A stretch of DNA of 64,000 nt, taken from the NCBI GenBank assembly GCA_964035545.1, contig OZ037768.1, forward strand, positions 21,671,319 to 21,735,318. The letters are read 5' to 3'. Shown one piece after another: positions 4,331 through 6,140 of the stretch (position 1 is the first letter of the stretch; the number at the start of each line of letters is the position of its first letter). The stretch comes from Bugula neritina (lineage: Eukaryota; Animalia; Bryozoa). Below the pieces are notes generated by a model. The model ran no database searches. It saw nothing but the letters and a program-made list of their open reading frames with translations, and was not told where the DNA came from. The translations under genes and the position numbers were made by a program.

Positions 4331-4463
4331 ATATATATATATATATATATATATATATATATATATATATATATATATATATATATATATATATATATAT
4401 ATATGTGTGTGTGTGTGTGTGTGTGTGTGTGTGTGTGTGTGTGTGTGTGTGTGTGTGTGTGTG
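4331..4463. repeat. (TA)n(TG)n microsatellite
   Basis: Directly visible dinucleotide runs. Confidence 0.98.
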
Positions 4464-4819
4464 TAGCAGTAGCTGGCAGCATGTTTACATGCACACTGTG
4501 TGTATGCTGTTTCATAGTCCATCGTCATAGCATATTAATAGCTCCTAAACAAATAAACAAAAATGATGTGTTCCAGATCCCATTGATCACCCAAATTGCA
4601 CCACCAGCCCCAAGTAATTCCAAATAAGGGAACAGAAATATTCTGGCGGATTTGTTGTCTTAGGCTTTTGCAATACACTTGATTCATTGATTGTGGCTTT
4701 TGCTGCGCAGTTGTAGGAATTTATTGTTTTGTTTAGGAGCTATTAATATGCTATGACGATGGACTATGAAACACGCATACACACAGTGTGCATGTAAACA
4801 TGCTGCCAGCTACTGCTAC
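4463..4819. repeat. ~91-bp inverted-repeat unit between microsatellites (possible truncated Penelope-like fragment)
   Basis: Arms 4463-4553 and 4728-4819 are reverse complements around a ~175-bp spacer. Each arm contains ATGACGA-N8-GAAAC, a degenerate hammerhead-like core. Confidence 0.7.
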
Positions 4820-4820
4820 G

Positions 4821-4927
4821 ATATGTGTATATATGTATATATATATATATATATATATATATATATATATATATATATATATATATATATATATATATAT
4901 ATATATATATATATATATATATATATA
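4821..4927. repeat. (TA)n microsatellite
   Basis: Directly visible. Confidence 0.98.
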
Positions 4928-4980
4928 CTATAAGTATAAAGGTTGCAATTGACTAAGATATTTTATTTAAAATCAATTAT

Positions 4981-5034
4981 ATCACCTACAAATTTGTTTC
5001 GTAGCATGAAATTACTGCCACTCATCAGGGTGAT
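4981..5034 (-). ncRNA. Type I hammerhead ribozyme (inverted copy)
   Basis: Reverse complement of 5668-5721 (ATCACCTACAAATTTGTTTCGTAGCA...TGCCACTCATCAGGGTGAT). Confidence 0.9.
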
Positions 5035-5127
5035 GTATAAAATAGTGAAACAACAGAATTGGAATGTAAAAAATGTATGGATTTAAAATATAGCTAGAGT
5101 ATTAAAAGCAAAAATAGGCATTATCAT

Positions 5128-5557
5128 AAAACATGCAATTGCATAAGGAAACCAAGCTGCCCACTGAATGGCAAGTGCTTACTCTCTAATATTATCTACC
5201 AGGCCACCATAACATCACCAAACAGCTCAAATACATACATCGGACTATGTGAAACCAACTTTAAAAAGCGCCTATACAATCACACCTGCTCTTTTAAGCA
5301 TAAAAGAAACAGAAATGCAACAGAGTTGAGTAAGCATATAATTATGGTATCTAAATGACAAAGGCACCAGCTACACAATCAACTGGAAGATCATTAGTCA
5401 TGTGCCCAGCTATAACCCCAACTCTAAACGTTGCATGCTATGCATTTTAGAAAAATATTATATTATATGCAAACCCAGTCTATGTACATTAAATAAAAGA
5501 TCTGAGTTAACATCAACATGCAGGCATAGCTCTAAATTTTACTTGAACCGGTTCTAA
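5128..5557 (+). pseudogene. C-terminal GIY-YIG endonuclease domain of a Penelope-like element, frameshifted
   Basis: KTCNCIRKPSCPLNGKCLLSNIIYQATI...TYIGLCETNFKKRLYNHTCSF...ELSKHI / (4-nt insertion ~5341-5344) / WYLNDK...WKII...SKRCMLCILEKYYII...LNKRSELTSTCRH...*. Shows IIY..YIG, catalytic-type R, E and N residues, and the CNC/CPL/C cluster. Absent from the ORF track. Confidence 0.9.
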
Positions 5558-5667
5558 TACATGAGCTTTGTTTTAAGATAATGCCTATTTTTGCTTTTAA
5601 TACTCTAGCTATATCTTAAATCCATACATTTTTTACATTCCAATTCTGTTGTTTCACTATTTTATAC

Positions 5668-5721
5668 ATCACCCTGATGAGTGGCAGTAATTTCATGCTA
5701 CGAAACAAATTTGTAGGTGAT
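5668..5721 (+). ncRNA. Type I hammerhead ribozyme
   Basis: Stem I ATCACC/GGTGAT; core CTGATGA (5674-5680); stem II GTGGCA/TGCTAC; GAAA (5702-5705); short palindromic stem III (ACAAATTTGT); cleavage triplet GTA, predicted cut after 5715. Confidence 0.9.
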
Positions 5722-5847
5722 ATAATTGATTTTAAATAAAAGATCTTAATCAATTACAACCTTCACACTTATAGTATTTAGCTCAATTTTCATAGAAAAT
5801 TTTGAGCACTATTTGATAACTGGTATCATAATATACATTTTACATAT

Positions 5848-6140
5848 TATATATATATATATATATATATATATATATATATATATATATATATATATAT
5901 ATATATATATATATATATCTCAATCTGTGGACAGCAGCTGTTTCGGGATTTGTCCATATATATATATATATATATATATATATATATGTATATGTATATA
6001 TATATACATATGTATATATAAATATATATATATATATATATATATATATATATATATATATATATATATATATATATATATATATATATATATATATATA
6101 TATATATATATATATATATATATATATACATATATATATT
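5848..6140. repeat. (TA)n microsatellite interrupted by a ~40-bp insert
   Basis: Directly visible; insert at ~5918-5956. Confidence 0.97.
5918..5956 (-). mobile_element. 3' half of a different hammerhead (extreme tail of another Penelope-like insertion)
   Basis: Minus strand reads GGACAAATCCC-GAAA-CAGCTGCTG-TC-CACAGATTGAG: partial stem II, GAAA, self-complementary stem III, GTC triplet. The CTGANGA half is missing. Confidence 0.55.

Follow-up and report, generated by a model that had tools for sequence, protein, structure and literature searches.

Retroelement fragments with hammerhead motifs, nested in a (TA)n-rich tract, are carried as cargo by a MULE transposon in the genome of Bugula neritina

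DNA transposons of the MULE type are known to capture fragments of host DNA. Retroelements with a preference for simple repeats have been described separately: Penelope-like elements of the Hydra clade (Craig, Yushenova, Rodriguez and Arkhipova 2021, PMC8557442) are shorter than 3 kb, encode a C-terminal endonuclease and a CxCX5C linker, and carry canonical hammerheads; almost all of their families lie in (TA)n, and (TA)n targeting, hammerheads and inverted insertions have all been published for this clade. Hammerheads also occur in the animal non-LTR retrozymes (Cervera and de la Pena 2014, 2020; Li, Clavereau and Pollet 2026, preprint 10.64898/2026.07.22.740005). Minimal metazoan hammerheads have been reported to need a second tandem copy and to cleave poorly in vitro (PMC4209133). 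Here we describe a locus of the bryozoan Bugula neritina, contained in a 64-kb stretch of DNA (64,000 nucleotides, hereafter the window), in which a 1.8-kb chain of microsatellites and retroelement fragments (4331–6140) is nested within a 7.4-kb MULE. Nothing in the locus resembles human DNA: the assembly measures 216 Mb, and the homologues are of invertebrate type.

The carrier was delimited by its terminal inverted repeats, target-site duplication and Pfam domains, and occupies positions 2837–10224 on the plus strand. The 780-bp terminal inverted repeats (2847–3626 and 10214–9439) are 98.2% identical, and the element is flanked by a 9-bp target-site duplication, ATACCAGTA, at 2828–2836 and 10225–10233. 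Pfam detected a MULE transposase domain (PF10551, E = 1.8e-15) and a FLYWCH domain (E = 1.5e-7); the first recognisable transposase coding pieces, located from open reading frames (ORFs) and Pfam, are a FLYWCH ORF at 6495–6752 and a MULE-domain ORF at 7156–8133, both on the plus strand. In its long inverted termini, its 9-bp duplication and its MULE transposase, which has a FLYWCH finger at the N terminus, the element conforms to MULE/MuDR transposons. As in those members that carry foreign DNA (Pack-MULEs, nested transposons), the cargo lies inward of the terminal repeat, ahead of the transposase gene, and is copied whenever the element transposes. However, the cargo of Pack-MULEs consists of host gene fragments, whereas that of the window element consists of microsatellite and retroelement fragments.

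Within the chain, four microsatellite blocks lie between three unrelated inserts, and all of them could be mapped as a first-pass annotation of the sequence had described. Block 1 (4331–4464) is (TA)37 followed by (TG)30, block 2 (4823–4932) is mostly (TA)52, block 3 (5844–5919) is (TA)n and block 4 (5957–6139) is imperfect (TA)n. The inserts, designated A, B and C from left to right, derive from a BEL/Pao LTR retrotransposon, a Penelope-like element and a tandem hammerhead family, respectively.

Insert B (4933–5843) is a 5′-truncated Penelope-like element of the Hydra clade, the clade being assigned by its published diagnostic traits. It is composed of an inverted, 5′-truncated partial tail copy (4933–5133, minus strand) and a direct, 5′-truncated copy (5134–5843, plus strand), the latter containing linker and GIY-YIG coding sequence (5134–5554), a hammerhead (5668–5721) and the tail. 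The two inverted arms (4922–5133 and 5569–5780) are 212 nt long and 96% complementary, and are followed on one side only by a 63-nt tail extension (5781–5843). The 3′ end is common to family copies and is followed by (TA)n, with an alternative 3′ end near 5780 in several of them; other family copies also have inverted arms, with differing break points. This structure shows that insert B is a single insertion, made up of a head-to-head inverted pair of 5′-truncated copies with a one-sided tail. The reading frame from 5134 spans the CxCX5C linker (C-N-C, five residues, C) and then the IIY and YIG motifs; it contains one frameshift near 5340–5345, and the second frame reaches a stop at 5555–5557. 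The GIY-YIG remnant noted in the first-pass annotation was borne out by Pfam (E = 1.9e-4; 22.1 bits, 0.5 bit below the 22.6-bit cut-off) and by alignment of the two pieces to residues 522–589 (58% identity) and 590–659 (46%) of a 662-aa coral protein.

The truncated window copy has no reverse transcriptase (RT), but an RT is present in longer family copies (L040, which has a 438-aa ORF, and L047) and in the 3533 homologues that were found. Because neither Pfam RVT_1 nor PDB sequence searches found an RT in full-length homologues, fold comparison was needed: an AlphaFold model (pLDDT 85) gave telomerase TERT as its best fold match (E = 1.8e-8), and the family consensus contains the motifs CRLINP.KSE.G, F.FDV..FYPSI, MGSYDGAE and YRDDG, indicating an RT of the Penelope-like/telomerase-like kind. 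Insert B thus resembles the Hydra clade (PMC8557442) in its C-terminal GIY-YIG domain, CxCX5C linker, homologue ORFs some 700 aa long, canonical type-I hammerhead within the 3′ region, insertion in (TA)n, 5′ truncation, inverted partial copy and one-sided tail, and its named homologues come from corals, as do those of the clade. It differs in that the window copy is reduced to its final ~710 nt and an inverted arm of 201 nt, in the length of the tail extension (63 nt versus the 30–40 nt described), and in its location inside a DNA transposon, by which it has been moved.

A structural descriptor found exactly two complete minimal type-I hammerheads in the 64-kb window, at 5668–5721 on the plus strand and at 5034–4981 on the minus strand, and gave no match in 200 shuffled sequences. 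The two are identical 54-mers, one in each arm of insert B, in agreement with the complete hammerheads noted in the first-pass annotation. The sense copy lies near the 3′ end of the insert and is a canonical hammerhead by sequence. The whole Rfam Hammerhead_1 model was aligned to 5668–5721 in a 111-nt scan (19.9 bits against a gathering score of 34; E = 0.0088), and no Rfam hammerhead was reported for the whole window at the gathering threshold or for a 2.1-kb segment at E ≤ 10. The core is conserved across 16 family copies, while all four bases are used at the free position N7 (C in most copies, T in both window arms, G in L040 and A in L041).

Insert C (5920–5956, minus strand) was identified from its genome matches and from full units elsewhere as the 3′-terminal ~37 nt of a 272-nt tandem, retrozyme-like hammerhead family. 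It comprises half a hammerhead, namely the 3′ strand of helix II, GAAA, helix III, the GUC cleavage site and the 3′ strand of helix I; CUGAUGA is missing. A half hammerhead of different sequence had been proposed here, and the complete CUGAUGA...GAAA...GUC motif with helices I–III was indeed present, together with the full unit, in family copies at L060 and L057. The insert sequence has 513 genomic matches at up to 3 mismatches (control, 0), with a tandem spacing of ~271 nt. Arrays consist of 272-nt units, up to at least five, at 97–99% identity, and are led by similarly 5′-truncated partial units. These data show that insert C is an extremely 5′-truncated insertion of this hammerhead-bearing tandem family and support its assignment to a second hammerhead family, unrelated to insert B. 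The B and C families both end in UAU/AUA-type sequence beside a TA tract. Rfam gave no hit for the family C ribozyme. The family shares with animal non-LTR retrozymes its short head-to-tail units of 272 nt, each with one minimal type-I hammerhead and a short palindromic helix III, and the 97–99% identity of its copies; of such a unit the window insert keeps only the ~37 nt at the 3′ end, which include half of the ribozyme. Family C may plausibly be a non-autonomous partner of a Penelope-like element, as hinted by common (TA)n targeting and 5′-truncated leading units.

Insert A (4465–4822, minus strand) is a fold-back fragment of a BEL/Pao LTR, as established from its genome copies and a parent element (L066). 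LTR nucleotides 1–273, in minus-strand sense from 4819 to 4547, are joined to inverted LTR nucleotides 1–82 (4465–4546), producing inverted arms at about 4465–4546 and 4737–4819. Genome copies match the insert at 4547–4819 only and then run upstream into an LTR of at least 631 nt. The 7.6-kb parent element has LTRs that are 99% identical and a 1755-aa ORF with Peptidase_A17 (Pao), Integrase_H2C2 and RVT_1 domains; it resembles BEL/Pao retrotransposons in its Pao peptidase, RT and integrase domains, in LTRs of at least 631 nt that start with TG, and in a purine-rich tract before the 3′ LTR. By comparison with a normal BEL/Pao integration product, insert A has only LTR nucleotides 1–273 and inverted nucleotides 1–82, and its odd fold-back junction recurs in a BEL/Pao copy at C3:2912084. 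Because its outward-facing ends are identical, insert A was at first considered a TA-targeting MITE; that reading was ruled out, since the genome copies are LTR ends of the 7.6-kb element. Its identification as the 273 nt at the 5′ end of a BEL/Pao LTR, together with the failure to find a hammerhead, likewise ruled out a Penelope-like element. The earlier description of this insert as an inverted-repeat unit with a degenerate core was accordingly right about the inverted arms, but the core is ordinary BEL/Pao LTR sequence in which the structural descriptor matched no hammerhead. Likewise, the proposal of a chain of Penelope-like fragments with 5′ truncation and inversion holds for insert B but not for insert A.

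The proposed targeting of (TA)n by several families could be confirmed for two of the three. In the B family, (TA)≥5 stands at a boundary in 19 of 22 loci, compared with 1.06% of 46-nt windows (background from the 64-kb window). Genome pattern counts of family C flanks used 515 anchors at 3′ ends; (TA)5 follows within 3 nt in 354 matches, about 330 of them unique, and TA is present on both sides of the family sequence at L057, at L060 and in the window. None of the 16 copies of the A family lies in (TA)n. The B and C families are therefore strongly tied to (TA)n genome-wide, a result supported by these counts, and the A family is not.

When MULE copies were aligned over 4331–6140, the chain was present in the other long copies. 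The genome contains three long copies, two of them full and the third internally deleted, which have different flanks and different 9-bp target-site duplications (ATACCAGTA, AGTTTTTAC and CATATGAGC). In the L002 copy the chain is colinear with that of the window at 98.8–99.6% identity. The C1 copy has kept inserts A and B as far as window position 5624; insert C and half of insert B are gone. Insert sizes are equal between copies, and only the repeat blocks vary in length; block 1 is 128 nt in the window, 58 nt in L002 and 1526 nt (all TG) in C1. One long copy additionally has private rearrangements. Full right-hand MULE regions number only two genome-wide, as do intact transposase ORFs, and the transposase protein of the C6 copy is 100% identical to that of the window. 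Segmental duplication as the origin of the three copies was ruled out by their differing duplications and flanks. Because the long copies share the chain and each has its own target-site duplication, the chain has been transposed as MULE cargo and is not a private secondary insertion, and the three transpositions postdate its completion. The suggestion that the chain belongs to the MULE consensus is upheld in so far as it is common to three long copies with their own duplications, but "consensus" is an overstatement, because the long copies number only three, one of them internally deleted, and at least eight short derivatives are without the chain. These derivatives part from the window after 4318, exactly at the chain start, and have other filler and (CA)n(TA)5 there, so that they do not offer a clean empty site; the different filler and their longer inverted arms rule them out as the pre-insertion state. 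No chain-free full-length copy of the window MULE lineage was found in the genome for comparison, and the left halves of the divergent relatives L012, L015 and L019 are deleted, interrupted or beyond the sequence compared.

We consider it very probable that nested insertions built up in a compound (TA)n/(TG)n microsatellite on the left inner side of the MULE and that the composite then moved passively with the transposon. The GIY-YIG endonuclease (CxCX5C linker) of a Hydra-clade element would nick (TA)n in this tract, and reverse transcription would be primed on TA-rich RNA 3′ ends; family C may have been copied in trans by such an element, and the entry of fragment A at the fragile repeat might, conjecturally, have been through cDNA capture or the repair of a break. 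This order of events is a probable one. The whole block (about 4319–6500) might instead have been taken up in one step, in the manner of Pack-MULEs, from a TA-rich, transposon-riddled locus. The general ability of MULEs to capture host fragments would accommodate this, as would the recurrence of the insert A fold-back junction at C3:2912084. In addition, a divergent relative (C5) matches the window only from 6506 rightwards, and 6163–6471 is a repeat in its own right, of which about a dozen diverged copies occur without linkage to MULE transposases; therefore, the acquired region may exceed the chain. However, the C3 locus has A alone with other flanks, own-genome searches found the A-B-C combination and a 100%-identical copy of B only inside the three MULE copies, and inserts B and C have the TA junctions and structure of ordinary primary insertions, so that one-step capture appears improbable. 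That the inserts are private secondary insertions of a single MULE copy is next to impossible, because the same inserts, with the same junctions, recur in two further copies that differ in target-site duplication and flanks.

Gradual nesting followed by passive transport also has to be weighed against a role for the chain. If the transposase pre-mRNA started in the left terminal repeat, it would include both the sense hammerhead and the 212-bp inverted repeat, which would attenuate transposase expression or yield hairpin small RNAs against the Penelope-like family. In favour of such a role, the hammerhead at 5668–5721 shares its strand with the transposase ORFs, neither arm has lost its hammerhead core, the cores do not differ between the two full copies, and all three long copies retain the chain; yet these copies are 98–99.6% identical, so that retention says nothing about selection, and C1 is without half of B and without C. 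Minimal metazoan hammerheads, moreover, have the dimer requirement and poor in vitro cleavage cited above (PMC4209133), whereas the window pair lies on opposite strands of a 212-bp inverted repeat, where the antisense partner would sequester the ribozyme in a duplex. Cleavage of these hammerheads in the MULE context is thus unlikely, the self-cleaving-RNA cassette envisaged in the first-pass annotation is doubtful, and a functional chain seems highly improbable. It is hardly more credible that the MULE spreads, along with the 212-bp inverted repeat of the Penelope-like tail, a (TA)n target that is already in place, whereby each new copy would seed a hot spot for TA-specific retroelements and, if transcribed from the MULE, either a hairpin RNA able to silence that retroelement family or attenuation of the transposase message through the sense hammerhead. 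A working retroelement landing pad was not borne out, because no long copy acquired a retroelement in its TA tracts after transposition.

The chain consists of ordinary nested mobile elements that hitch-hike with a MULE, and reveals no new mechanism. For annotation, the hammerheads in the window MULE copies should be regarded as cargo and give no evidence of local retroelement activity, and a fold-back fragment of a BEL/Pao LTR such as insert A may pass for a MITE or for a Penelope-like unit. The locus provides a clean, dated case in which class I fragments, including hammerhead motifs, were moved by a class II element. It also adds one more genome that independently backs the (TA)n targeting already published for Penelope-like elements of the Hydra clade, and backs a common targeting machinery for the retrozyme-like family.

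The region 4331–6140, AT-rich eukaryotic DNA with no sign of human sequence, was examined with Tandem Repeats Finder and by direct reading. It consisted of four dinucleotide blocks separated by three non-repetitive inserts: block 1 (4331–4464, (TA)37 followed by (TG)30), insert A (4465–4822), block 2 (4823–4932), insert B (4933–5843), block 3 (5844–5919), insert C (5920–5956, minus strand) and block 4 (5957–6139). The coordinates and arrangement in the first-pass annotation, which had described Penelope-like hammerhead fragments chained through (TA)n inside a MULE DNA transposon, were correct. 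The inverted repeats of this MULE (2847–3626 and 10214–9439) were 98.2% identical and 16-nt subterminal repeats were present; comparison of three genomic copies placed its ends at 2837 and 10224. Distinct 9-bp target-site duplications flanked the window copy (ATACCAGTA), a copy on contig C6 (AGTTTTTAC) and a copy on contig C1 (CATATGAGC). FLYWCH and MULE transposase domains were found in ORFs 6495–6752 and 7156–8133. The chain therefore lies within the MULE, with the left terminal repeat region on one side of it and the first recognizable transposase exon on the other. Minus-strand ORFs of tandem peptide units at 14484–14828 and 15992–16456 (SILAIALPWYLVQSSL and VLYYYSVILLQCYI types) indicate that the sequence beyond the MULE includes minisatellite arrays.

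The own-genome searches covered an assembly of 216 Mb in 321 contigs. In pairwise alignment the C6 copy was colinear with the window along the entire element, with 99.6% identity left of the chain and 98.8% over 4434–10208. The C1 copy contained block 1, A, block 2 and B as far as 5624, followed by a deletion of window 5625–8255; its (TG)n had grown to ~1.5 kb (about 763 units). Insert sizes were the same in all chain-bearing copies and the repeat blocks alone varied in length (128/108/70/183 nt in the window, 58/92/50/169 nt in C6 and 1526/86 nt in C1). Since each of the three copies has its own target-site duplication, at least three transposition events must have followed completion of the chain, which is true cargo of the long MULE copies. 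The proposal that it belongs to the MULE consensus holds for a small autonomous lineage, although this "consensus" amounts to three copies. A DNA transposon of ~3.6 kb, private to the C1 copy, has inserted there at the site matching window ~4211 (L031+L032, G000:C1:31402500-31416500, joined positions ~3433–7060); its terminal inverted repeats begin TAGTCTAGAAGTAACCTCC.

In targeted genome searches, the window copy and the C6 copy were the only ones with a complete 6141–7150, to the right of the chain, and with an intact 325-aa MULE-domain ORF. At least eight short derivatives, ~95% identical, retained 2837–4318 and diverged precisely at the chain start, continuing with short filler, (CA)n, (TA)5 and an inverted arm of 943–957 nt; they lacked the chain, but also all other internal sequence. 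These non-autonomous elements, with a central (CA)n(TA)5, include L005–L010, L013, L017 and others, and further shorter, rearranged derivatives cover MULE-query 358–1175 (window about 3204–4021). A 17-nt direct duplication (TATGAGTAGCCTATATA / TATGAGTAGCATATATA) at 4304–4340, abutting the left edge of block 1, was found in all three chain-bearing copies and was missing from the short derivatives. Because a divergent relative on contig C5 aligned with the window from 6506 onward only, the MULE could have acquired about 4319–6500 en bloc. The segment directly right of the chain (6163–6471, ~310 nt) would be compatible with this, being a repeat with about a dozen diverged copies (67–84%) at loci unrelated to MULE transposases, none of them near a transposase homologue, and being absent from the C5 relative; all the same, we consider acquisition in one piece improbable. 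It may represent a fourth repeat that was nested or captured here, and near 6410 it includes the TATA-like string "gtatataag".

Insert B is a Penelope-like element, assigned to the Hydra clade by its diagnostic traits. Its arms (4922–5133 and 5569–5780) were 212 nt long and 96% complementary. The direct copy (5134–5843) started in frame and contained a CxCX5C motif and a GIY-YIG core, with one frameshift near 5340–5345 and a stop at 5555–5557; the Pfam GIY-YIG score (22.1 bits) fell just below the cut-off of 22.6. The two reading-frame pieces aligned to residues 522–589 and 590–659 of a 662-aa protein of the coral Oculina patagonica, so the fragment comprises the entire C-terminal endonuclease region. 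Among longer copies of the genome-wide family B, L040 contained a 438-aa ORF and shared with L047 about 1150 nt upstream of the truncation point of the window copy. This ORF had 3533 homologues of about 700 aa each, whose consensus included reverse-transcriptase motifs such as YRDDG. Pfam and PDB sequence searches for the family B reverse transcriptase returned no match. In structural comparison, an AlphaFold model (pLDDT 85.4) matched telomerase TERT best (E = 1.8e-8) and other reverse transcriptases next, as expected because the Penelope-like reverse transcriptase is the sister group of telomerase. Several other family B copies used an alternative 3′ end near 5780, and the one-sided tail of insert B corresponded to 5781–5843. 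According to Craig et al. 2021 (PMC8557442), elements of the Hydra clade are shorter than 3 kb, have their endonuclease at the C terminus and carry a modified CxCX5C linker and canonical hammerheads, and Penelope-like insertions are generally 5′-truncated, often beside an inverted truncated copy, with a tail of 30–40 bp on a single end; insert B agrees with this description in each feature, with a longer tail of 63 nt.

A hammerhead descriptor (helices I and II of at least 4 bp each with CUGANGA between them, then GAAA, a short helix III and UH) matched the 64 kb exactly twice, at two identical sites in B (plus strand 5668–5721, minus strand 5034–4981), and never in 200 shuffles. All three helices were present in the predicted minimum-free-energy fold, and Rfam Hammerhead_1 aligned end to end at 19.9 bits, under the gathering score of 34. 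The catalytic core was conserved across 16 aligned family B copies, with decay in older ones. N7 was the sole freely variable core position (C in most copies, G in L040, A in L041), and its T in both window arms fits a single insertion yielding both. Helix III is short and palindromic; metazoan hammerheads of this type are said to work as dimers and to cleave weakly in vitro (PMC4209133). The sense hammerhead lies on the transposase strand, is the sole one on that strand and would pair with the 212-bp inverted repeat around it; the suggestion of an active ribozyme cassette is unsupported.

Insert C is a minus-strand, 5′-truncated stub of a 272-nt family. Its 37-mer had 513 genome matches at up to 3 mismatches (control, 0), often spaced ~271 nt apart. 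The units, 97–99% identical, are joined head to tail in arrays, the longest with at least five of them, and each array is led by a 5′-truncated partial unit, often of just 30–50 nt. Family copies at loci L060 and L057, both flanked by (TA)n on either side, contained the full motif on the opposite strand: helix I, CUGAUGA, a GGGG/CCCC helix II, GAAA, short helix III, GUC and the helix I return strand. Insert C ends at the usual family 3′ end, 12–13 nt beyond the cleavage site; the half with CUGAUGA is missing from it. The family is retrozyme-like.

Genome copies of insert A matched 4547–4819 only, extended upstream into common sequence and occurred as same-strand pairs about 7.6 kb apart. One pair (L066), with LTRs of at least 631 nt and 99% identity, enclosed an opposite-strand ORF of 1755 aa that encodes Pao peptidase, reverse-transcriptase and integrase domains. 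As its copies proved to be paired LTRs of a BEL/Pao element, insert A is LTR nt 1–273 (sense on the minus strand) fused to an inverted copy of nt 1–82, with the LTR 5′ terminus at both outward ends. A Penelope-like origin of A was ruled out by this sequence and by the family copies, 0 of 16 of which adjoined (TA)n. L066 (G000:C4:15565600-15574200) is seemingly an intact, young BEL/Pao element with an uninterrupted gag-pol ORF, and several similar 7.6-kb pairs exist. The fold-back junction recurred once, at C3:2912084 (95% identity), joined to a purine-rich tract and the internal region of a BEL/Pao copy, outside any microsatellite. At that locus (L065, G000:C3:2911500-2913000, about 585–937) the 3′ LTR is cut at nt 273 and followed by its inverted first ~97 nt. 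The common junction suggests either descent from a single rearranged copy or recurrent microhomology-driven snap-back. We tentatively favor arrival of A as a snap-back cDNA or repair-synthesis product captured at a fragile repeat.

The proposed microsatellite bias was borne out for B and C, but not for A. For family B, (TA)≥5 lay at the homology boundary in 19 of 22 independent loci (13 left, 11 right, 5 both), some non-TA boundaries being limits of the reference sequence rather than real element ends; in this window the (TA)n background amounted to 1.06% of 46-nt windows, and outside the MULE to 0.26%. The 15-nt 3′ anchor of family C occurred 515 times (control, 1), with (TA)5 within the next 3 nt in 354 matches, about 330 of them unique; the remaining anchors were mostly internal to tandem arrays. 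TA also on the 5′ side of 5′-truncated copies (L039, L041, L051, L059, L060) argues that the elements inserted into a tract already in place, and against a templated tail. B and C copies were adjacent in one TA tract at L057 (about 1501–2540) and L060 (about 438–2260), and thus such chains recur in the genome.

After the MULE moved, none of the three chain-bearing copies took up another retroelement in its TA tracts, which leaves a working landing pad unsupported, and nothing tested points to a role of the chain. The overall first-pass interpretation is thus supported in part: B and C belong to known kinds of hammerhead elements that target TA, and A does not. The chain is a nested arrangement whose members belong to known kinds.
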